38,838 nt of DNA, taken from Octopus bimaculoides. Its lineage: Eukaryota. The stretch's first letter is position 1. Each line of letters begins with the position of its first letter. The DNA is taken from the NCBI RefSeq assembly GCF_001194135.2, contig NC_068987.1:50005461-50044298 (forward strand). Direction: 5' to 3'. Positions 1,750 to 34,697 of the stretch are shown here, piece by piece. The notes below the pieces were generated by a model. The model saw only the letters and a program-made list of their open reading frames with translations. It was not told the origin of the DNA and searched no databases. A program made the position numbers and the translations under genes.

Positions 1750-2502
1750 TTGGGTCATCCCATAGATAATGCATGAACTAAAGGTTGAAGTGGGGGTGGA
1801 ATAAAATGACTGCATCAACTTGCTATAAAAGCAGGTAGTAATTTTACCTTGTGCTTATTTTTAGTGCAAGTTTTGAAGAGTGCAGTCTGATTTTAGCAGT
1901 TATTTTTTCAAAGCTATAATGGAAGTGAGAAAGGAACATATTCGGCATATTTTGATTTACGAGTTCAATAAAGGCAACAGTGCAACGGAAAGTGCGAGGA
2001 ATATTAATGTAGTATATGGGGAACGGACAAGCATAAGCCAGTGTCAGCGGTGGTTCCAGAAATTCTGAGCTGGAAACTACAGCCTAGAAGATTAGCCTCA
2101 TCTTGGAAGATCTGTAGAGCTCGACAAGGATGTCCTGCAAACCTTGGTGGAACAAATCCCATCGTAACTGTTGAGGAACTATCAGAGAAGCTTGGATTTG
2201 GTCGTTCAACCATTCATTGACACCTGCGTGTCATTGGAAAAGTTAGCAAATTGGGTCAATGGGTTCCTCACAAACTTTCCGAGTCTAATCATACGCAGAG
2301 AGTGAATGTGTACTCTTTGTTGTCACGTCTCATGAATGAACCTCTTTTGGACTGAATAGTGACTGGTAACAAGAAATGGGTTCTCTATAAAAATGTCAAG
2401 CACTGATGACAGTGGTTAGGGGAAAGAGAAACACTGGCACCTCAGGCTAAAGAAGGTCTTCACCCACATATGGTGTTGTTATTTGTTTGGTGGGATATGA
2501 AA
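1750..2502 (+). mobile_element. Mariner transposon relic (left TIR plus N-terminal half of transposase), 4E-BP intron 1
   Basis: TA then TTGGGTCATCCCATAGATAATGC terminus. ATG at 1919 reads MEVRKEHIRHILIYEFNKG...WVPHKL...VTGNKKW...LHP...VWWD with several stops and a frameshift, and is truncated after WWDMK. Confidence 0.92.
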
Positions 2503-3051: not shown

Positions 3052-3219
3052 GTACTAGAATATTTTATGACCGAGCATTTTTACTGCAATGCCGTAATTC
3101 TCCATTGGCTAAAAGCCCTCCTGCAAATATGGCACAGATTCCTGGGATAACAATGCCCGGAGAAGTTGAAATGCCTTGTAATCCACATACAGCAGTTGAA
3201 GAAGAGAAAGGTACTAAAG
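3052..3219 (+). CDS. EIF4EBP: eIF4E-binding protein (4E-BP/Thor), internal coding exon (exon 2)
   Basis: Acceptor ttttttatcctctag|G at 3051/3052 and donor AAG|gtaggt at 3219/3220, both phase 1. Translates (G)[55 protein letters not shown]: canonical YxxxxLphi motif, SP/SPP sites equivalent to human S65/T70, and the IPG(V/I)T secondary eIF4E-binding motif. Exon 1 (TPGG/RAIP region) was not found in the window. Confidence 0.95.
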
Positions 3220-5100: not shown

Positions 5101-5473
5101 CCTCTGTGTGTGTGTGTGTGGAGGCTTCTAGAGTACTTTCAAATCACGTTTTATGAAAAACTTTATTTTTAAGGATGTGATATATTTTCATATTCTGTGT
5201 TTATTGGAAGATTGAAGTTCTGAACTATTTGTTTAAAAGTCACATGTTCATTATTGGGTCTCAGATATTATAATACAGTGAGCTACAAAACTTCATTGTT
5301 CAAGCAATTTAGTGAAGAACATGTAGGAGGTGGGGTATAATCTAAAAACTATTAGGAAGGGAGATAACTTCAATATGATTAGTTGACCTAAATTTATAGA
5401 CGATGTAAGTAAAGTGGAATAGGTCTGTCTTTAACCATTTTGTTACCCAATGAAATAAACTGTTTAGTTTTTA

Positions 5474-5694
5474 TTAACCTCTTTGTTACCATATTTCTGA
5501 TAAAATATGCTGCTTTCAGTTAATTTTGAAAATAATGAATTTTGTGAAATAGCTGTCACTATCAAGCTAATATTTAGAACACAATTTAACATAGAATTTT
5601 GATGGACATTTTTAATTTAGATCACTTTAAAACAGAAAGTTCGTTGTATCAAGGTATCAGGCAGGTTGGTATCAAAATGGATAAACATTTGCTT
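5474..5694 (+). mobile_element. MITE family C
   Basis: TTAACCTCTTTGTTACC...GGTTGGTATCAAAATGGATAA. Confidence 0.75.
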
Positions 5695-5829
5695 AAACAT
5701 GTAATGAAATTGTGCTATCTGTTCCCATAAAGTTTGAAAATAATCAAGATTTTTTTGGGTATATCTAATAAAATAGCTAAATCCTTTTTTGTTTAGTAAA
5801 ATAACTAATTTTGTTATTATTAAGCTGGT

Positions 5830-7481: not shown

Positions 7482-7702
7482 AACCTTTTTGTTACCAAAT
7501 TTCTGTTGAAATAAACTGCCTTCGTTTTTATTGATTTTGAAATAAATGAAGAGTTTAATAACATAAATTTGTCATTATTAAACTGGTGTTTGGAGCATAA
7601 ATTAGCACAAAATTTTGATGGAAGGTTTTGACTTAGATCACTTTAAAACAAGAAGTTTGTATCATAGAACTAGGACAGTTGCAGGTGCGTTAGTATCAAA
7701 AG
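7482..7702 (+). mobile_element. MITE family C
   Basis: AACCTTTTTGTTACC...TTAGATCACTTTAAAACAAGAAG...GTATCAAAAG. Confidence 0.75.
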
Positions 7703-8695
7703 ACAAAATGGAGAGAGAAAAAATATAACATTAGCTATGTGAAAATTGTATTAATAGTGAACAAATTGTCTAGAATTATGTCCAGTTTTCTGCTGGAGAA
7801 TTTGGATGATGACACAATTTGTTATCTTAGGTCATCCTTGATAATTTAAATATAGAATTAAGTAGCTGTGAGAGCTGTGATGGCTGAATGTAAAAAAAGA
7901 AAAATATTGGCCTGTTTAAATTTTGGGTCTAGTGTTCAAACCTCTAAGTTAGCATTTCTTTTTATCCCTGACCAATTGACTAACTTAATTTTTCTTAGCT
8001 GTTAGAAATCAGTTCCATAGCTATTGGACAGACTAATAGCATCACTTCAAGAGTTATTTACTTCTGTCTACTGTATCCTGGGAGCTGTAGGAAACATAGG
8101 TTGTGTTCAGATTTAAATCTGATTGAATACTAGTTCTGAAAGTAAATCTTCTGACTATGGAATAAAATATTTGCCTTTTTCCTAATAATTATGCAGCACA
8201 TAAATTGTAAATAGTCCAACTGAAGTTGACTTACCTAGATTCTAGATATGCAACAAAAGAATTAATTATTTTTTATTTGAGGAATTTTTAGACTTTTCTA
8301 AGCTAAGAGAGAGGTATAACTTAGGTTAGTTCCATTAATGTGGCAGACTGGTTGTCAAAAAAAAAATGTGGTCCAAGAATTCAAAAGGGTACAGGTCTGC
8401 AGAAAGGTTGAATATAGCAGTTAGTAAAAGCAATATTAAGCTGGAAAAGGGTGGGGAATGACATGTATTGGGTGGATGTTTTTAGTGAAGCAGAGGTTAG
8501 TAAGTCAACACTACAGGTTGTCATAAAACAAGAGATGTAGTGGTCATTGGCCTGATAATTGTTCTGGTAGATTTCTAGAGATAGTGGGGAGTTTGTTGAG
8601 TAAGTTTCCATTGTCATATTTAACATCTACACCAAAGCTTTTTTTTTTTGATAGTTCATGAGATAATAGTTTCTTGAAGCAAGCCAATCACTTAG

Positions 8696-10190: not shown

Positions 10191-10361
10191 TAATTAACTA
10201 ACATTTAAATCTCATCACTCATTGTTGTTTTCACATTCCACTTATACTTTTCACCTCTTCAGAGTTGATGAATATATATATGAGTAGACAAAACAAAACT
10301 ATAATTTGAATATTATAAATTGACATTTTTCTTTCTTTTCTTTTCTTTTTTCTTGTTACAG

Positions 10362-10399
10362 AAAATGACGAACAACCACAGTTTCAGATGGACATTTGA
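10362..10399 (+). CDS. EIF4EBP: 4E-BP terminal coding exon (exon 3) with TOS motif
   Basis: Long pyrimidine tract then cttgttacag| at 10361. The phase-1 join to exon 2 gives ...GTK-E-NDEQPQFQMDI*; FQMDI matches the raptor-binding TOS motif (human FEMDI) at the extreme C-terminus. Intron 3220-10361 (7142 nt). Confidence 0.93.
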
Positions 10400-10770
10400 A
10401 CTTTTCTTCAAACTTTTCGTGTGATTTTCTATGGTTCTTCTTGATGTTGTTTCTTCTGAACAGGCATTTAAAAAGAAAAAAACAAAAAAACGATACCTGC
10501 AAATTCACCATGCTGATGTTGGATTTTGTGTGCTGATAAATAATCTAAGTGCCAGATATTTCATTGTCCAGCATCTTGATGTTACCAGCGGCTCATTGTG
10601 AGGAAACTTACTTGGTCCATTTTCGTAAAGAAAAAGACAGAAAACAAAACAAAACAAAACAGAATGGAAACAGCAGTAGCAACAACTTAACATAGACAAA
10701 TCTCTTGAAATTAAATTTGTAAGGTGTGTACCTGGATGGATGTGAGTATGTATGTTTGTGCCAGTGCGTG

Positions 10771-11095
10771 TTAGTGTATGTATATGTATGTGTGTATATA
10801 TAAATATATACATATATATACGTGTATATATATAATATGTATATATGTACATACATATACATGTGTGTATGTATATAAATGTATATATGTATACGTGTAT
10901 GTATATATATGCATATATGTATAATATATATGTATACATGTATGTATATATATGCATATATATATAATATATATGTATATATGCACATGTATGTATATAT
11001 ATATATGTATATATACATATATATGTATACATGTATGTATATATGTGTATATATATGTATATGTATGTATATATATATATATATGTATATGTATG

Positions 11096-11189
<94 letters not shown>

Positions 11190-11233
11190 TATACTTATGT
11201 GTATGTGTGTGTATAAATATATATATATATATA
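10771..11233. repeat. Compound (AT)n/(GTAT)n microsatellite
   Basis: About 460 nt low-complexity tract with a pure (AT)n run at about 11100-11185. It explains the Y/I/H/M-rich spurious ORFs. Confidence 0.97.
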
Positions 11234-12841
11234 AATAATGTGGTGACTTGTATCTGCATATAAAGGGCAGCAGACAGCATTCTTTAAACTCTATAACAAA
11301 GCTGTATCTGAAAAAGGTAAAACTTAAATTAGAGCATATTGGCTAATCTTTATGATATTTATATATTTAATGTATATGTATATGGTGTATTATTTAATTT
11401 AGTTCAAAATTTAAATGCTGCTACATATGTACATCTGTTTTCTGTCCTATAGGAGATTACTTCAAGCTATTTTTGAATGGCTGCATGATGAACTCTCATA
11501 ACAGAGAAAACAGGTGTTCATGTATAGTAGTATTTAACTAAATTATGTAATCCACTCTGCTAGCCTGCATTGAGTCCTTTCTACGTTTGTGGTTTATCTT
11601 GTTCATCAGACAAGTATTAACCAAAAAAAAAAAAAGCGAATAAATAGTATTATCACCATTCTAAAGTATTCTTCTTAAGGATTTAAAAAAATATTTTCCT
11701 TATCTCCAACTTTGAAATTGATTCAAAGATAAAGGAGGAAAATTGTATTAAGAACATTTTAAATGATAAAGGAGAGATAGAAGAGAAAGCTCTTCTCACT
11801 TCTCTGTTATAAATGTGGTTTCACATAATTTTTGCTTTTGTCTTTGTAAGACATTAAAAAAAATCAATAAGAAAAAGTTTATTTTTTCTTCTATGGATCT
11901 CTATTTCTTAAAATGTAGTATCTACGAAAACCGAACACTTTCGTTTGTATTTTGGTTTAAGAGTTCAACTTTTTTTCCAATTTTTTCTTTTTATATATTT
12001 TAAAAAAAATTTTTTACTGGAATATTTTGAATGTGAAAAAAAAATTTCTATTCTTACTTCTGTGGTATTGAAAAGAGACAAAAAACTTAAAACAATTTTT
12101 AATTTCCATTTATTCACAAACAAATCAGATTGCCTTTTATTAGGTTTTTTTTTTAAGTTTCCTTCTTGCAATATTTTATTTTAAAAAGTTTTTTTTTTTT
12201 TTTTTAGAAAACAACGAAATATTTGAATATATGTTTATTTTCCTCCTTTTTCTTCTTTATTTCTTTAACCTTACAGAATATTAAGATTTTTGGGTTGGAA
12301 TTAATTCATTCTATACTGTTTCTGCTGTCAAACTTATTAAATATCAACATAGTCAATGAACAATGGGAAAAATATGCCACCAGTGTATGTTTGGAAGTTC
12401 ATGTTTCGTACATATTTATAAGCCCTTTATGCAAATTTTATATATCTTCAGCAAGATTTTCTACTTGTTTAAATCAGTCTGTCTTCCACTGATCTCTATA
12501 AAACCTAACTAGTTGCATTGATATTTATCTTCTTTCAGAATCCTGTGATATTTTTTAAAATCTATTCATTCTTAATAAGTTCTGGCAGATTAAAACATGA
12601 ATATCTAATCACTGTTGTTTTACATCATTAGAGAACACCTCTTCCCTTTAGGCAGTATAGGTTCATAACACACACACAGTTAATCAGAATGAGTGAATTT
12701 TGAAATAGTGTTTCAACCTCATTGTGTGTCTCATCAGTCAAAGTTAACGTGTCGGACTGATGACTGATGAATCTCACAAGAGCATGGAGTTCTTGTTTAT
12801 AACAATCAACAAATTATTTGCTAATGTCTGCCAGACAGATA

Positions 12842-13025
12842 ATAATTCATGGGGTTCATACAGAACAGCAAGAATCCAAACAATAATGTATCTATTCATT
12901 CTTAATACTTTCTGGAACATTCAAATGTAATTATATGACCACTCAAATCTACCAGAATGTATGAAAAATTAATTGATATGTTATTGTTTGGATTCTCATT
13001 ATTCTGCATATACCCCATGAATTAT
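12842..13025. repeat. Imperfect inverted repeat (74-nt arms, 36-nt spacer)
   Basis: 12842-12915 versus 12952-13025: 60/74 positions complementary, without gaps. Confidence 0.9.
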
Positions 13026-14664
13026 GTTTTTGATCTATTTCCAGTCAATTTGTTTTCTCTACTCAATTCAAGTTCACTGATTTCTTTCTTAGTCTGAGAC
13101 AAAATTGTCTCCATTATATATACCCTCATTCTTTATTCTATTCTTCTCTTTCTGTGTTTCTCTCCCTTTTGTTTTTTTGAAGGAATATCTTCTATAACTC
13201 TCAGTTGCTATCATGTATGTATAGTACTTCCATTTTGACTAGCAAGTGTAATTCCATGAAAACTGATCCTTCATTAGTTTACTTCCCTACTATTTTTTTT
13301 CTCTTCACTTAAAACACCTCTATTATTTAACCCTTTGCAAATTGAGCTCAGTTGAGTTTAGTTGTCATATTGTTAAAACTAGCAAAACTAAATATATTAA
13401 ATGAAGGTTTTATGATTGTATTTGTTTATATGAAATGTTTTTATTTAGATGTCTAGTTTTTTTTTAATGACAGTATTACAAGTAATACAGTCATATGTGT
13501 ATCTTTTGTGTGTTTATATGTATATTTTCATATATATGTGTGTGTGCGTGATCATACTCAAATTTATTGATTTTATAATGGTGCTGTATTGTTTGTTAGC
13601 ATTAGACTTATCTGATATTCTATTTTATTTTTGAATTCAAAGTCTCATTATTGTCTAGAGCTCTACTAGCTTTTGATTCTATACTGTCTGGTAATAATAT
13701 TATATAAACTGCTAGATTGTAGATTGGTGCTATGATAAATTTCAGTTTCTGGTGCTGTATTATCGCTTTAGATTTAGACTGGTGCTATATCACTATACAA
13801 ATTCTCTCTATCTCTTCTTATTGTCTTTACTTACATATACAATGCATACTGTCTCTACATTTTAGTATTAGATGTTAACCTTCTCTTTAGAGACCAAAAT
13901 GCATTTAACTTTAAAGTGTTTCTCATATCCTGGGATAGTGCAACTTTTTCATTCCTTATTTTTCTGAAACACATCTAAGAAAATATCAACTTTTCCAGTA
14001 CTGAAAGTGGTTTTCTGTTTTCTCCCCCCCGCCCCCCTCCAATGCTTTTAGATTAGCAGCAAATTTTAGATAGACTGTCTCGTGCAGGTTTATGTTGGTT
14101 ATCTGATGTTCTTAATTTCCAGAATATCATGTAAATTTAAGCATAATAAGGAAATTCAACACATTTTAGTAAAACTAGTACAGTCTGAGGAAACCAGTTG
14201 TTCTGCTTATGCAAAAGTAATGCAAACCAAAATTTATTTCACTGTTTGAACTGTTGTAAACGTTTTTGGGTGTGATTAGCTGGGTTTACTTACAGTTATC
14301 TTTTTTTTTTTCTTAGGAAATATACCCACCATGCCTAGTTTTTCTTTCTTTCTCCCACTTTCTGTATGTTCAGTAAAATGCTCTCTTATGAAAAGAACTT
14401 CAACTGCTTCATTTTAAATTATTAAGTCACATTACTATTAAAGTAAATGTGAATAGTTGTAAGTAGAATTTTTTAAACAAAATTTAAGAGCACTCTACAG
14501 CAAGTAGAGTACAAATTTCTTATGATGTAAAGTTGTCTGCTTTTCTATTATTTGAAGTTTCATGCTGATGTAGCAATCTTCAGAGTGATTATCAGCATCA
14601 TCTGATTATTTGGCAGGGAAATTTGGAGTAATGTAAATGTAGTCAACTTTAATTATAATATTGA

Positions 14665-14987
14665 ATGTGTGTGTGCACATGTATGCATATACTCATACAC
14701 ACTCACACATGTATGTGTATATATGTATGTATGTATGTATGTACGTACACATGCATGCACATATATATGTATATATATATATCTATGTACATATATATAT
14801 GTATATAAATATGTATGTATATGTGTGTATGTATGTAAAATAATTAATGTATGTATGTATATAAGGCTTGCTTTAATACATGTATCTGCCACTTTTACTG
14901 TTGATTCTTTCATTTTGGAAAGTCAACATATTGAAGGACTATTACTACTTTTTGTATATGTATGTATTGTATAGACAGACATATAGG

Positions 14988-15025
<38 letters not shown>

Positions 15026-15332
15026 NNNNNNNNNNNNNNNNNNNNNNNNNNNNNNNNNNNNNNNNNNNNNNNNNNNNNNNNNNNNNNNNNNNNNNNNNNN
15101 NNNNNNNNNNNNNNNNNNNNNNNNNNNNNNNNNNNNNNNNNNNNNNNNNNNNNNNNNNNNNNNNNNNNNNNNNNNNNNNATATATAATAGGAAGGGCATT
15201 CAGCTGTAGAAACCTTGCCAGATCAGATTGGAGCCTGGTGCAGCCTTCTGGCTTGCTAATTCTCAGTCAAACCGTCCAACCCATGACAGCATGGAAAGCG
15301 GATGTTAAACGATGACAGTAATGATATATATG

Positions 15333-15363
<31 letters not shown>
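14665..15363. repeat. Compound AT/GT microsatellites around an assembly gap (N at 15026-15179)
   Basis: (AT)n on both sides of 154 Ns, (GT)n at 15342-15363 and a mixed tract at 14665-14865. Confidence 0.95.
15185..15325 (+). mobile_element. Family B 3' fragment next to the assembly gap
   Basis: TAGGAAGGGCATTCAGCTGTAGAAACCTTGCCAGATCAGATTGGAGCC...GCATGGAAAGCGGATGTTAAACGATGA. Confidence 0.8.
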
Positions 15364-15365
<2 letters not shown>

Positions 15366-17038
15366 TTTTTTGTTTCTTCCTTAAAACATGTTTAATGTAA
15401 AATAACATGCCTCTCTGTTACATGCAGACATTTAGGTCATTTGTTGTATTTACAAGCCTAGTTTTATTCTAAGAATTGGCCTTAGCTGGGATCTTGTTAT
15501 TGTGTTGAATATAATAGAAATATAGAAATAAAATAGATAGTGGATCTGTTTGTATTTAAGTATGAATACTAGTATTTACCAATTCTAAAGAGTTGAGGGA
15601 CTGTTTGATAATGCTAAATAAGTAATTAATTTGTTTTCTGCTAACTTTAAATTTGACAGAATTGGAATATTATTTTGAAATATTAAAATTACAGAGCATT
15701 AAAAAAAAAAAAAGGAAAAAAAAAATTTCAACAAAAAATTTAATTTTTATAATTAACTTTTTACAAATTTAAAATAAGTACATCCTTTATTTGATATTTT
15801 TGTTCAGTATTAGTTTGATTTAACTTCCTAATTAAGATTAATCAAGTCTGGATTTCGTTTGTAGCCATGAAATGAAATAGAATCACTAGAATTGAAAGAA
15901 ACTAGTTGTGGTCTGTGTCAAGAAATGAGTGAAAAGCATGAAAAAGTTATTTTGGTGAAGCATGAGAAAAAGTATCTCTTATGTTTGGCAGGGGTTGTCA
16001 TCAAAGAGTTGCTCTTGAAGCACTCACTAAGTGTAAGATATTTCTTTTCATGCCATACTAACATACCTTGCATCTTTTTTTCTGTTTTTTTTTTGTTGTT
16101 TTTATTTTTTACAATTATTTTCATCTTTTAATAACTGTCACCATGTTTTTTCCTTCAAGCATTGACATACAGTTTCTCAGATTTCTTTGGATAGTTTATT
16201 GTATTTATGAACTTGAAAGTGCATCTCATATTTTTGCACTAAAACTTCCTCTCAGCTGTTACAAAATAATATTACACTGTCATGTTTCGGGGTATCATTT
16301 TCAATTTTATAGGTTATGATACCTTGATTTTCTTGGATTAAAACCGAAAGGCTCTTGAATAGAAAAGAACAACTCCACACAGTACATGTAATATTAATGT
16401 TAAATTGAATCAAGTTTCTTAGTGGTTCCATGAAAGATTTTAGAGAATTGGCTTCATATATTTTCTCTAAAATAATGGTCTAAAAAAATTGTTTGCAAAT
16501 GGCCTACATGAATGTTTCAAATAAACAAAGCTTTATCAATTTTCATAATTGTATTTGGTAAAGTACAGGATTTCCTACTAGTCAGCTGTCTTTGTTTGAA
16601 TGAATGTAGCCCACCATCTTTTGAGCTGAGCTTGTTTTGGATTAAATTTGGACAGCCATCATAATATTACTAGTGAAATCTGGCGAAGACTTTGTTCAAA
16701 GTTGTGGATGTATGTAATGTATTCATGTAAATATCCATTATGTATAAATATTTGGATGGATACAGAGACAGAAATAAAGATGTTAAACAAATGAACAGAA
16801 ATTAAAAATTTCAAATTCTAGAAACTCTAAATTCACATGTGACGTGAATCTTAATTCTTTCTCCATTTGAAATGATTTGCTGTAAAATGGCTTCATTATC
16901 TTAATCCTTTTTATAACAAATACCAAATGAACTGTTATTTCAAACTCAAACTTTAGACTTTTCAATCTGGAATAAACTGACCTTGAATGTTGTACAACCC
17001 TTAGTAAGATTATATGTGCTGTGTGCAGCTGTAGTGAG

Positions 17039-17075
<37 letters not shown>

Positions 17076-18109
17076 GTATGTAAATAGCTAGATAACAACA
17101 GTAATATATGTAGTCCTTGTAAATTATGCAATTTCAGCTTGCTGCTGCTCACCTTGATCTACAGCTCTTCGTTGCTTATATACCTCTTAACTGTTACTTT
17201 CTCTAAATGAAAATCTCATCTGTGACTTCAGCCTAGACACGGATTATTGCTTATTACACTCCTCATGTACTTTCTAATTTGTAAGTGTAAGCTTTTGTTT
17301 CATTATTATTATTAATCTTATATGTGTAGTTTTCAATGAGTTCTAAAATGGACTTGTGAAATTTCTTTTTAAACAAATGAAATCCAGCTTGACAAAAACA
17401 AAACAAACAAACAAACAAAAAAAAGAATTAACCATACATCTTTTCTTTTTGTGAATGGATGTTTTGATAATCATTTTTAAGTAGGAATCAAAATGAATAA
17501 AAATTTTTAACTTTTAAACTATTTTTTCTACAAGTTGTCTGATTTGGCAGTATATGTTTCTTAATTCAGGTATTTTACAGTGTTTTGTAGTCCTAAATAT
17601 ATATGTGTATGTACATGTGTGTGTTAATGCATATATATTATATATAGCAGGTGTATAGACTAATGCATATATAAAAATGCATTCATGTAAGAATGCATCA
17701 AGTAAATTACAACACTATTTTCATATAAGAAAAGTTAATTTTTCTTTTTGGTACCCTTAAGACCAAAAACCAGTAAAATAATTCAAATATTGTGACAACT
17801 TTGTAAACTTTTTTTATTACATCAGACCCTTTGCTCCAGTTACTGCAAGCCATGTCAGTATGAAAAAACAGGACACAATGAAAGATATTTTGAATCCTAT
17901 TTATTTTATTTTCAATAGATATCAATGGGTATAGAGTTAATATAAACTTGTTCCAGCTTTCTGAACAATAAAGCTCATCTGTAGTCTGTTGTTTTGTTCC
18001 ATATTTTTACAATCTTAAAATACCCTATTCCTACATTTTATGCACATACACATATATTCACACATACATACATACATGTATATATGTATATGCATGTGTG
18101 TGTGTGCGT

Positions 18110-18288
18110 GCAATCTGTGGAGAGATGTGCTTTCAGTTGGAGGATTGAAAATGCATGTCAAAAGATTTCACACTGTGGTACCTTTTCCTTCTGACAGCCA
18201 GCACAGGTGTGCATTATGCAATAGAATGTGCAAATCTTTGGCTGGGCTCAAGAGTCATATGAGGGCTTCACATTGCATCATTGCATAA
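18110..18288 (+). mobile_element. 3' end of an RTE-like LINE ORF (terminal CCHH motif)
   Basis: HRCALCNRMCKSLAGLKSHMRASH* (18208-18288) resembles the C-x2-C-R-x-C-x-S-x2-GL-x-SH-x-R tail of RTE ORFs. RIEN appears just upstream in a shifted frame. No TGEKP linker and no acceptor. Confidence 0.5.
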
Positions 18289-23314: not shown

Positions 23315-24572
23315 TTAGGGTGTAAGGAAATTAATTACATTTTACCAGAAAGGATATAAAAATGAATGCAAACTATGTTTATCTGAACAGTTTTAATCAA
23401 GAATGTATTCATCATAGTTTTCAATGATTACAGCCCAATAGGAAAGTAACTTTTTTTATGCCACATTCAAAGAAACCCATTTCTTTTCCTGAAAAATGTC
23501 TAAAAGACTGTTTTCAACTTCCTCTGTTTCTGAATGTTTTGCCTCTTATAAAATGTTCTAGTGATTGGAACAGATGGAAATCTGTAGGTGCTAAGTCAGG
23601 TGAGCATGAAGGATGTGGAAGAACTTCCCATCCTAATAATCTTATTTTTTCTTGGGTTTGTTTTGAAGAGTGTGACAGTGCATTGTTGTACTGCAGAATA
23701 ACATCTTTTCTGTTTACCAAAGCTGGCCACTTTCGATGTAATTTTTTATTTACACAATCAAGTTCTTGGCAATAGACATCTGCATTGCTGGTCCTCTTAT
23801 GTTTCAGTAGCTCATAATAGACGATACCTTTCATGTTCTACCAAACACAGAGCAAGGATTTTGTGGATAGAGTTCTGGTTTTGGTGTTGGCACTGGCCTC
23901 TCATTATGTGATAACCATTGTCTTTTTTGTTTTCTGTTGTGATGCAAACCCATTTTTCATCACCTGTAACAATGCACTGCAGAAATGACAGGTTGTTATT
24001 CCTGATTAGAAGACTGCTGCAGATAGTGGGATGTTATGTTCAGTTCTCAAGAATAAGCTCATGTAGAACCCAAATTCTTTCTTTGCATGTTTTCCCAATT
24101 TACTTGAGATGTTTGTGGATAGTTGAAGATGACATTAAATTTTTGTGCCAAATCTCTGGTGCTTTGACATGGATCTAATACAATAGTCTCATTCAAAAGG
24201 TTGTCATTCAGAGTGGGTTGTCTTCCAGAGCATGGCTTGTCAGATATGTTACAATTGCCATCTTTAAACCATAGCTGACACGAGTAAGCTTTCACTGTAT
24301 CTGGATACACTTCACAAATGATTTTCATTGCTTCTGTAGTGGTATTTTTCTTTCAAAAAACTCATACAGTAAGCAATGATAAATATGTTGTTTCATAAAG
24401 TTATTATCCTCCTTGGGATTAATTACTGAAATAACCATGACATACTGGTGGATAGAAAAGATGACATCCTATTTCTAGACAGTTCCCACCTATTCAACCT
24501 TGGCTCTTCCGTGATTAGTTGATTCATATATCATAGTGGTGAAAAAACGCAATTACTTTCCAAACACCCTAA
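23315..24572 (-). mobile_element. Full-length (1258 bp) decayed mariner element
   Basis: TA at 23313-14 and 24573-74. TIRs TTAGGGTGTAAGGAAATTAATTAC and the reverse complement of GCAATTACTTTCCAAACACCCTAA. Transposase fragments: HTH (YPDTV...QLWFKDGN), LQYNNA, WEVLPHPSCSPDLAPTDFHLF, ending IIENYDEYILD* at 23393. Frameshifted. Confidence 0.93.
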
Positions 24573-29004: not shown

Positions 29005-30906
29005 TCAACCTGTGTGTATTTTTATATGTCTGTTTAACCCAGTACTTTGAGAAAAACATTTTCCACATATTTGACAGTGAAATGGTTTCTCCCCTGTGTG
29101 TGTTCTTTTATGACAATTCAAACTAGAGCTTCGAGAAAAATATTTCCCACATATTTGACAACAAAATGGTTTCTCCCCTGTATGTGTTCTAACATGAACC
29201 TTTAGATCAGATGCCTTCAGGAAAGTTTTCCCACATGTTTCACAGCGAAAGGGTTTTATTCCAGCATGCATATAAGTATGTTTTTTAAGTTCACTTAAAA
29301 CAAAAAAAGATTTCCTACATATTTCACAAGCAAATGGTTTTTCATTATTATGGTTGTTTTGATGCAAATCTAACTCATAACTAGTTGTAAAAGTCTTACT
29401 ACAAATGATACAGTGGCATGAATTCTCTTCCAGATGAGCTATTGTATGAACTTTTAAATCAGAAGTTGTAAGGAATTTTTTATTACATATCTGACACTGA
29501 ATTTCTTTCTTGCTCTTCTCATGTCTTTTTTTATGTATAAGTAAATTATATTTTGTAGAAAACTTTCGGCTGCATATATCACATTGGTATGGTTTTTCTC
29601 CAGTGTGCAATCTGTTGTGTAACTTCAGAACAGAACTTCTAGTGAAATTTTTGCAACAGATTTTGCATTGAAATGGTTTCTCCCCCGTATGTGTTTGAGT
29701 GTGTAAGTTTAAATTACAACTGGTGGAAAAGCTTTTGCCACATATTTCACAGCGATATGGTTTCTCTCCTGTGTGAGTTCTTGTATGCACCTGTAAATGC
29801 GAACTTATAGAGAAGCTTTTCCCACAAATCTCACAAGAAAATGGTTTTTCTCCAGTGTGAGTTCGTTTATGTAATTTGAGGTTTTGGCTAGCAGAGAATC
29901 CTTTATTACATATATCACAATAAGATAGTTTTTCTCCAGTGTGTTTTCTTGTATGTAACCTTAGTACAGATTTAGAAGAAAAGTTTTTGTCGCAAGTAAG
30001 ACAGTGATAAGGTTTTTCTCCAGTGTGTGTTCGTGTATGAAGATTGAGATTGTAATTTGTTGAGAAACCTCTTCCACATATTTCACAGTGAAATTCTTTC
30101 TCACCAGTATGTATTTTCCTATGTACATCTAATTTATATACTGTGTAAAAACTTTTATTGCACACCTCACAGTTATATGACTTCTTACCACTATGAATTT
30201 GTATGTGTAACCTTAGTTCTGATTTTGTGGACAGTCCTTTTCCGCAAAGCTTGCACTGAAATGATTTTTCCCCAGTGTGCACTTTTATATGCAAGTTTAA
30301 CTTATAGTTTGTTGTAAAACTTTTACCACACATCTGACAAGGAAAAGGTTTCTCTCCTGTATGTGTTCTTGTGTGGATCTTCATTTCAAATTTCTCAGAA
30401 AAGCATTTCCCACATATTAAACAAAGAAAAGGTTTTTCCCCAGTGTGTGTCCTAATGTGTCTTTTCAGTACAAAACTACTGGAAAATTGCTTGTCACATA
30501 ACTTACAAGAGAAAGGTTTTTCACCTGTATGTGTCATCATGTGTCTTTTCAAATGTGAACAAGTTGGAAAACATTTCTTACATATTTCACAAGGAAAAGG
30601 TTTTTCTCCAGAGTGTGTTTTATTGTGTACCCTAAGTACTGATTTCCTTGAATATCGTTTATCACATATCTCACATTGAAATGGCTTCTCTCCTGTATGA
30701 GATCGCATATGTATCAGTAGTTCAGATTTTTTACAAAACTTCTTTTCACATAACTCACAGCATATTCGCTTTATTTTGTGTTTTCTTGTAGATGTCATCT
30801 TTTTGCTGTCTGTTAACTCTTTTGTTTTGGGACTTATTACTTTATTTTCATCCTGTTTATCTTGAGAAATATTAGCAGCCACACTCAATGTATTTGTCTC
30901 CATCAT
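29005..30906 (-). CDS. Poly-C2H2 (Kruppel-type) zinc finger protein, 633 aa, 21 fingers, no recognisable effector domain
   Basis: Intact ORF with 21 C-x2-C-x12-H-x3-H units, mostly TGEKP(F/Y) linkers, after a Lys-rich leader of about 48 aa. An in-frame TAA lies about 54 nt upstream of the ATG with no AG in between, so the CDS is most simply single-exon. Confidence 0.95.
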   Translation of the reverse strand: MMETNTLSVAANISQDKQDENKVISPKTKELTDSKKMTSTRKHKIKRICCELCEKKFCKKSELLIHMRSHTGEKPFQCEICDKRYSRKSVLRVHNKTHSGEKPFPCEICKKCFPTCSHLKRHMMTHTGEKPFSCKLCDKQFSSSFVLKRHIRTHTGEKPFLCLICGKCFSEKFEMKIHTRTHTGEKPFPCQMCGKSFTTNYKLNLHIKVHTGEKSFQCKLCGKGLSTKSELRLHIQIHSGKKSYNCEVCNKSFYTVYKLDVHRKIHTGEKEFHCEICGRGFSTNYNLNLHTRTHTGEKPYHCLTCDKNFSSKSVLRLHTRKHTGEKLSYCDICNKGFSASQNLKLHKRTHTGEKPFSCEICGKSFSISSHLQVHTRTHTGEKPYRCEICGKSFSTSCNLNLHTQTHTGEKPFQCKICCKNFTRSSVLKLHNRLHTGEKPYQCDICSRKFSTKYNLLIHKKRHEKSKKEIQCQICNKKFLTTSDLKVHTIAHLEENSCHCIICSKTFTTSYELDLHQNNHNNEKPFACEICRKSFFVLSELKKHTYMHAGIKPFRCETCGKTFLKASDLKVHVRTHTGEKPFCCQICGKYFSRSSSLNCHKRTHTGEKPFHCQICGKCFSQSTGLNRHIKIHTG

Positions 30907-34625: not shown

Positions 34626-34697
34626 GGCAGTTTGGTTTAATGGTAAAACACTTGACATGTAATCACAGAGATGTGAGTTCAAGTCTCATGGCTGGCC
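34626..34697 (+). pseudogene. tRNA-like sequence (Thr-TGT-like loop), probably a tRNA pseudogene or SINE head
   Basis: 72 nt. Acceptor stem 6/7 pairs including G-U; D stem GTTT/AAAC; 7-nt loop CATGTAA; T arm GTGAG-TTCAAGT-CTCAT. The anticodon stem has only 3 pairs and position 33 is A, so it is unlikely to be a functional tRNA. Confidence 0.6.

Follow-up and report, generated by a model that had tools for sequence, protein, structure and literature searches.

The eIF4E-binding protein gene (4E-BP) of Octopus bimaculoides is followed, on its sense strand, by a tight cluster of four TGGTGCT heptamers, each of them a match to the seed of the microRNA (miRNA) miR-29. The cluster was analyzed within a 38.8-kb stretch of octopus DNA (hereafter the window, whose positions serve as coordinates throughout). 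Under the control of mTOR, 4E-BP acts as a brake on cap-dependent translation; in other animals it is linked to growth, to synaptic plasticity and to the response to stress. We consider it rather probable that the four TGGTGCT(A) elements are functional miR-29 response elements in a long 3′ untranslated region (3′UTR) isoform of the octopus 4E-BP mRNA; the cluster is predicted, from sequence analysis, to be probably a real miRNA control point. The evidence comes from the local excess of the heptamer, from the complementarity of its flanks to the 3′ half of miR-29 and from an independent enrichment of the same heptamer in the 4E-BP mRNA of a cuttlefish.

Four miR-29 seed matches and their predicted pairing beyond the seed

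TGGTGCT occurs on the + strand at positions 13579, 13725, 13750 and 13780, with start-to-start spacings of 146, 25 and 30 nucleotides (nt), and the four sites (sites 1 to 4) together span 208 nt. All lie in sense orientation 3180-3381 nt past the 4E-BP stop codon (TGA at 10397-10399), and no antisense copy was found in the site region. Under the canonical definition of an miRNA site, a match to miRNA nt 2-8 with or without an A opposite nt 1, the cluster comprises four 7mer-m8 matches, two of which (at 13725 and 13780, where the heptamer is followed by A) are 8mers of sequence TGGTGCTA. A preliminary description of this DNA had listed these positions, the two 8mers, the 25- and 30-nt spacings and the location downstream of the 4E-BP stop codon, all of which were confirmed on the + strand.

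An order-2 Markov model predicted 0.16 TGGTGCT copies in 10400-14940 and 0.28 in 10400-18000 (4.5-7.4 kb), yielding Poisson probabilities for four copies of 2.6e-5 and 2e-4, respectively, whereas scaling from window-wide dinucleotide shuffles gave an alternative expectation of ~0.46 per 7.6 kb per strand. The earlier estimate of 0.1-0.2 chance occurrences per 7.6 kb was thus of the right order, if slightly low. Over its full length and both strands, the window holds seven copies of the heptamer where dinucleotide shuffles predict 4.69; there is no overall enrichment, and the excess is therefore purely local. When all 7-mers of the 38.8 kb were considered, TGGTGCT and AATGCAT alone, microsatellites aside, had at least four non-overlapping copies in a span of 215 nt. 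The AATGCAT copies lie on the + strand at 17626, 17662, 17676 and 17692, within 66 nt, and are absent from the cuttlefish 3′UTR described below; AATGCA is no more than a 6mer match to miR-33.

The flanks of the miR-29 sites are 67-77% A+U and the region is devoid of stable structure (z=-0.5), a context that is favorable for miRNA sites. A structured RNA at the sites was rejected (fold z=-0.5 and -0.09 on the two strands, with no Rfam match there), as was a miR-29 precursor on the opposite strand, the sole miR-29-like 17-mer being the antisense of site 4. Neighboring miRNA sites cooperate when they are ~8-40 nt apart, a range reportedly established by Grimson and by Saetrom in 2007. Sites 2, 3 and 4, at 25 and 30 nt from one another, fall within this range, and site 1, 146 nt upstream, falls outside it.

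That UGGUGCU(A) is the miR-29 seed match, as the preliminary description had stated, was borne out by the published octopus response element. In the supplements to Zolotarov et al. 2022 (PMC9699675), TGGTGCTA is the response element of Ovu-Mir-29-P1_3p, an entry of class 'Seed: Co-detected', and occurs 53 times in aligned O. vulgaris and O. bimaculoides 3′UTRs, with 38 of the 53 occurrences (0.717) conserved; the expression of Mir-29 in O. vulgaris is given there as 'Vertical lobe, Frontal lobe'. The mature cephalopod miR-29 beyond its seed was not found in the literature, full text and supplements, and all pairing analyses relied on uagcaccauuugaaaucaguuu, the miR-29 of Biomphalaria glabrata, as an assumed rather than octopus-derived sequence. 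Among miRBase entries, those prefixed cte and bfl are by name from Capitella and amphioxus. The B. glabrata sequence displays 0 mismatches to cte-miR-29a and bfl-miR-29b-3p (PMC7328434).

The most extensive pairing was predicted at site 1 (13566-13586, +), where the 7mer-m8 match at 13579-13585 is part of a near-complete duplex. RNAduplex paired miRNA nt 1-20 through 17 Watson-Crick and three G:U pairs at -22.4 kcal/mol, with nt 1-10 and nt 11-20 separated by a single bulged target U at 13576 and nt 21-22 left unpaired; 0.15-0.3% of grafted or shuffled flanks did as well (P ~0.002-0.003). The TargetScan-style 3′-pairing score of this site was 5.0 (nt 13-18, offset 1). At site 2 (13715-13732, +; 8mer TGGTGCTA at 13725-13732), the upstream GATT at 13715-13718 pairs with nt 14-17 at offset +1 for a score of 3.5. 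At site 3 (13739-13756, +; 7mer-m8 at 13750-13756), ATTTCAG at 13739-13745 pairs with nt 16-10 over a 4-nt target loop, the score being 4.5 (nt 11-16, offset 3). Finally, GATTT at 13771-13775 of site 4 (13771-13787, +; 8mer TGGTGCTA at 13780-13787) is in exact register with nt 13-17 (score 4.5, offset 0). Given the assumed miR-29 sequence, all four sites show 3′-supplementary pairing in its usual sense of at least three to four contiguous pairs around nt 13-16 with a small offset. The preliminary description had credited two sites with such pairing: its register for GATTT at site 4 held, its pairing at site 1 held as well and turned out to be understated, and the pairing of sites 2 and 3 comes in addition.

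The four scores sum to 17.5, against a null mean of 2.6 per site (P=0.0003 relative to flanks grafted from the same region). When the 3′ half of the miRNA was shuffled 10,000 times against the real flanks, the same sum had a P of 0.0012, a value that is not inflated by similarity between the flanks since these are kept fixed. The complementarity of the octopus flanks is specific to the 3′ half of miR-29, which argues against a different reader of UGGUGCU.

The cuttlefish 4E-BP mRNA and the presumed extent of the octopus 3′UTR

The closest relative of octopus 4E-BP that was retrieved is a 76% identical protein (P0001) encoded on Logan RNA-seq contigs. One of these, contig L001 (5943 nt), stems from run SRR20545814, a Sepia esculenta larval RNA-seq data set (PMC9538352), and consists of an intronless coding sequence at 369-647 followed by a 3′UTR of at least 5.3 kb; P0001 is present on similar contigs in eight further samples. 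Because L001 joins the coding sequence to 5.3 kb of 3′UTR, this cuttlefish 4E-BP mRNA has a very long 3′UTR. The further Sepia contigs L002-L010 are fragments of the L001 transcript or of that of a 96-97% identical Sepia species; they break at homopolymer runs and fall short of the sites.

Counting TGGTGCT in the Sepia 3′UTR, a single pre-specified test, revealed three sense copies (2990, 5391 and 5569) against 0.22 expected (P=1.4e-3), along with a GGTGCT 6mer at 5444 and one antisense copy of the heptamer. When all 7-mers were ranked jointly over both UTRs, TGGTGCT came out as the top word that is not of low complexity. The Sepia 4E-BP 3′UTR is independently enriched for TGGTGCT. The heptamer is the only invariant element among the seven octopus and Sepia sites; the 3′-pairing scores of the Sepia sites are 4.0, 3.0 and 2.0, and extended pairing of the site 1 type is found in none of the three. 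Several miR-29 sites in the 4E-BP 3′UTR appear, from this comparison, to be common to octopus and cuttlefish, with individual sites turning over.

Two local resemblances were seen between the two clusters, neither of which is significant after multiple comparisons. Sepia 5391-5407 and octopus 13579-13595 (site 1) are alike at 15 of 17 nt (TGGTGCTG.ATTG.TTG), and Sepia 2977-2996 and octopus 13734-13756 have an upstream A.TTTCAGT in common, placed ahead of Sepia 2990 and of site 3. The likeness of Sepia 5391 to site 1 and of Sepia 2990 to site 3 may reflect orthology or common pairing constraints.

BLAST and local alignment found the octopus and Sepia UTRs otherwise unalignable, save for ~50 nt past the stop codon and one 43-nt block. 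The block, at 11811-11853 (+), is 86% identical to L001 1397-1439 (E=1.3e-8) and harbors two small hairpins (ATGTG..CACAT and TGTCTT..AAGACA). Its alignment to the Sepia UTR indicates that the octopus sequence past the stop codon is homologous to transcribed UTR out to at least +1.45 kb. The octopus post-stop sequence and the Sepia UTR are, moreover, nearly identical in base composition, both being rich in T on the sense strand. Provided that the mRNA includes the sites, the octopus 4E-BP 3′UTR would extend at least from 10400 to 13787 (+), an extent to which the similar T-rich composition, the Sepia 3′UTR of at least 5.3 kb and the lack of a coding gene at 10.4-29 kb all point. We infer from these observations that 13.5-13.8 kb belongs to the octopus 4E-BP mRNA.

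No gene-like open reading frame (ORF) was found between the 4E-BP stop codon and 29 kb, and no + strand ORF with family support at 10.4-18 kb. The spurious ORFs that overlie the sites (13449-13634 and 13732-13878), looked up by exact match in a public contig collection, had no record there, and a six-frame ORF query of 12.9-14.5 kb against a protein database returned no match at E<=1, a result that is uninformative on transcription. As the octopus 4E-BP coding sequence is itself absent from the protein database, such null ORF searches say nothing about whether the region is transcribed.

Several low-complexity features occupy the same interval. A ~600-nt (TATG/TATA)n microsatellite at ~10.7-11.3 kb begins ~350 nt past the stop codon and would be part of the mRNA if the long UTR is real. 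Similar tracts are located at 13490-13550 and 14650-14970, and a run of N (assembly gap) at 15026-15179 falls inside the presumed 3′UTR or in the intergenic region.

Likely origin of the cluster, proposed mechanism and alternative explanations

The four sites are partly duplicates of one another. Sites 1 and 3 have in common TGGTGCTGTATT, followed at equal offset by TTAG(CA/AT)TTAGACT, while sites 2 and 4 are both directly preceded by TAGATT(G)TAGA and directly followed by AT; these shared flanks imply that the sites are not four independent events. Downstream of site 1 the sequence reads TTAGACT-TATCTGA-TAT where the unit formed by sites 3 and 4 reads TTAGACT-GGTGCTA-TAT. The presence of TATCTGA in place of GGTGCTA points to a decayed fifth copy (TTATCTGA, 13608-13615, +) that, by the paralogy of sites 1 and 3, would occupy the site 4 position in the duplicated unit. 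A local duplication of a two-site unit is the likely history suggested by these alignments. Tandem Repeats Finder reported no array at the sites, and a dispersed repeat or transposon was rejected within the window, 13560-13800 having no second copy there. The copies are ~60-70% identical in their flanks and all four heptamers are intact, a pattern that fits seed retention, although, with the seeds serving as anchors of the alignments, this is a post hoc argument.

In the mechanism that we propose, Argonaute (AGO) loaded with miR-29-3p would bind the seed matches, with sites 2-4 acting cooperatively at their 25- and 30-nt distances and 3′ pairing reinforcing all four sites, site 1 most. AGO binding would bring in GW182 and CCR4-NOT and thereby lower the stability and the translation of the 4E-BP mRNA wherever miR-29 is expressed. 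To judge by the O. vulgaris report, the places of miR-29 action could be the vertical and frontal lobes, and the 4E-BP brake on eIF4E-dependent translation would be relieved in the cells that express the miRNA. The cluster itself may have grown in part by local duplication of a two-site unit, the seeds being kept as the flanks decayed.

Several observations weigh against this interpretation. Sites deep in very long UTRs are generally less effective. The octopus sites lie 3.2-3.4 kb past the stop codon; canonical AATAAA or ATTAAA signals are absent between 13787 and 14437, the next one being the ATTAAA at 14437. The octopus miR-29 past its seed is assumed from Biomphalaria, and the 3′-pairing results depend on it; by duplex energy alone, sites 2-4 are no better than null. 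Since the sites are partly paralogous, their independent origins may number only two, for which P(>=2) is ~0.01-0.03. Site-by-site orthology with Sepia was not demonstrable, the collinear chain not exceeding block-shuffled controls and the local alignment score around the sites falling below the shuffle mean; what the two UTRs have in common is several copies of the heptamer (three in Sepia vs 0.22 expected). The median octopus 3′UTR measures 350-380 nt, so that a 3′UTR of more than 3.4 kb would be an outlier; editing-table coverage of Ovu-Mir-29-P1_3p is 133-209 reads per tissue, hinting at a modest abundance; and EIF4EBP is not among the conserved octopus 8mer sites in the part of the published list (PMC9699675) that was covered.

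These points bear in part on the idea, which we regard as unlikely, that the cluster is a neutral by-product, an AT-rich unit containing TGGTGCT having been duplicated locally in untranscribed intergenic DNA or in a UTR where it has no miRNA function, with the Sepia excess being a coincidence. The flanks common to sites 1/3 and 2/4 and the decayed copy at 13608-13615 are what such a history would leave behind, the reduction to two independent origins brings the octopus excess down to the probability given above, TGGTGCT ranks 13th among Sepia 7-mers when no prior hypothesis is made, and the place of the sites in the octopus transcript is itself something that we infer. Yet no array was reported by Tandem Repeats Finder, the window holds no other copy of the cluster that would make it a dispersed repeat there, and four heptamers have stayed intact between flanks that retain ~60-70% identity. 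The Sepia excess, for its part, was obtained with one pre-specified heptamer (P=1.4e-3), and duplication does not explain why the flanks are complementary to the 3′ half of miR-29 (P=0.0012), as the null keeps the flanks fixed. That the sites are functional for miR-29 but reside in another + strand transcript (for instance, a non-coding RNA or a gene farther downstream that has escaped annotation) strikes us as quite improbable: a distance of 3.2 kb from the stop codon, the long microsatellite and the gap at 15026-15179, both of which hamper annotation, leave room for one, but the Sepia 4E-BP contig carries like sites in continuity with its coding sequence and the 10.4-18 kb interval is devoid of + strand ORFs with family support.

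The two remaining explanations concern the partner of the sites and the direction of their effect. Recognition of UGGUGCU by an RNA-binding protein, or by another small RNA with the same seed, would account for the heptamer alone being invariant in the seven octopus and Sepia sites; we deem it very improbable in view of the specificity of the flanks for the miR-29 3′ half and of the exact match between the heptamer and the published octopus Mir-29 response element (PMC9699675). It is also improbable, in our estimation, that the sites bind miR-29 but act mainly on the miRNA, either by titration or through a site 1 that triggers target-directed miRNA degradation. Site 1 does pair with the seed and with nt 11-20 around one central bulge, four sites in 208 nt amount to a high local density, and the low octopus Mir-29 read coverage in PMC9699675 would be compatible with such an effect. 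On the other hand, the last two miRNA nucleotides are unpaired at site 1, the interruption there is a single target bulge, extended pairing is seen in 0 of 3 Sepia sites, and the miR-29 3′ end used is an assumed sequence rather than that of the octopus. Known degradation triggers combine a seed match with extensive pairing up to the miRNA 3′ end, typically have a central mismatch larger than one nucleotide, and lower the level of their miRNA in a ZSWIM8-dependent manner. For site 1 in particular to be a miR-29 degradation trigger or a high-affinity decoy within the 4E-BP 3′UTR is a long shot on its predicted pairing; if true, the level of miR-29 in brain lobes would be dictated by the octopus 4E-BP mRNA, in a convergent counterpart of the NREP/libra-miR-29b pair (see below) that would tie miRNA turnover to translational control. 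We favor miR-29 response elements that act on the 4E-BP mRNA, AGO binding and repression being predicted steps of this scheme.

The 4E-BP gene, its surroundings and relation to known systems

The identification of the upstream gene as 4E-BP, made in the preliminary description, is correct. Two coding exons were recognized on the + strand. The first, at 3052-3210, encodes the YDRAFLL form of the YXXXXL-hydrophobic eIF4E-binding motif and ends in ...EEEK; it matches Pfam PF05456, is 78% identical in nucleotides to the Sepia coding sequence and has an alternative in-frame donor after 3219. The last coding exon, at 10362-10399 with its acceptor at 10361, encodes (E)NDEQPQFQMDI and aligns to Sepia L001 606-702. 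Its end, ..ENDEQPQFQMDI, is a TOS-like motif in which the C-terminal FEMDI is represented by the variant FQMDI, as it is in the cuttlefish-type proteins P0001, P0011 and P0012. The joined peptide matches Pfam eIF_4EBP PF05456 with 70.9 bits (E=1.1e-19); its database relatives are all 4E-BPs and the best matches are all PF05456 proteins. The part of the window upstream of 3052 yielded no exon encoding TPGG/TTP (the N-terminal TTPGG phosphorylation sites). As exon 1 is presumably located beyond the edge of the window, the missing TTPGG exon reflects how far the window extends and does not speak against the identity of the gene.

Within or just upstream of the large 4E-BP intron, a dispersed repeat is present in three + strand copies (2813-2974, 5599-5730 and 7615-7728), each of which yields a similar short ORF (MM.GF.LDHFK...). 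Transposase fragments of the mariner/Mos1 type (Pfam HTH_48 and Transposase_1) are found in the 4E-BP intron at 1880-2355 (+) and downstream at 23514-24328 (-). From the 4E-BP stop codon to 29 kb, the window contains microsatellites, the N gap, a weak zinc-finger-like fragment at 18.0-18.3 kb and the mariner debris at 23.5-24.3 kb. The zinc-finger-like fragment is an 82-aa ORF at 18040-18288 (+) with a C2H2-like finger at its end and weak Pfam matches, most of which do not exceed the threshold; a retroelement fragment or a zinc-finger pseudogene may account for it. Farther downstream, a single ORF at 29005-30906 (-) encodes a 633-aa C2H2 zinc-finger protein with ~20 fingers. No other gene is called in the 10 kb to each side of it, an interval covering the window from ~19 kb on, and an exact match of this ORF assigns the window to chromosome CM046607.1 of the O. 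bimaculoides assembly GCA_001194135.2. An Rfam tRNA match of 34.9 bits at 34626-34697 (+) could be a transfer RNA (tRNA) gene or a tRNA-derived short interspersed nuclear element.

The preliminary description knew of no described link between miR-29 and 4E-BP, and we likewise found no paper with a direct one; co-mentions, as far as the sources (some of them abstracts) go, concern mTOR read-outs. The only direct miRNA prediction met for EIF4EBP2 in these sources involved miR-23a. In mammals, miR-29 has already been connected to PI3K/AKT/mTOR (e.g. PMC4111545), and thus to mTOR/4E-BP signaling, with 4E-BP serving as a read-out. The miR-29/4E-BP pair is, as a prediction from sequence, a fairly well-supported new miRNA-target pair, and by site count 4E-BP would rank among the strongest predicted octopus miR-29 targets. 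The vertical and frontal lobes are the learning centers of the octopus. If the prediction is true, a brain-lobe miRNA that has repressed coleoid 4E-BP since the octopus/cuttlefish split would link the cephalopod miRNA system to local neural protein synthesis.

Bitetti and colleagues are said to have reported in 2018 that a site in NREP/libra triggers the degradation of vertebrate miR-29b. The same miRNA family is at play in the octopus, where site 1 likewise combines a seed match with extensive, centrally interrupted 3′ pairing. Unlike the NREP/libra site, however, octopus site 1 resides in an unrelated host gene, its predicted pairing stops at nt 20 and is interrupted by a one-nt bulge, and the extended pairing is not found in cuttlefish. 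As an element type, the clustered set of miRNA sites is entirely conventional. It resembles lin-4/lin-14 and let-7/lin-41 in the clustering of sites for the same miRNA in one 3′UTR, in the 25/30-nt spacing, in the A/U-rich context and in the 3′ pairing, and differs from them in that the octopus sites are known from sequence, are located far inside a presumed UTR of great length and are partly locally duplicated. Compared to the conserved octopus response elements (PMC9699675), the species group and the 8mer definition (A plus a match to nt 2-8) are alike; whereas that study counts 53 8mers across ~8000 aligned 3′UTRs, two 8mers and two 7mers are gathered here within 208 nt.

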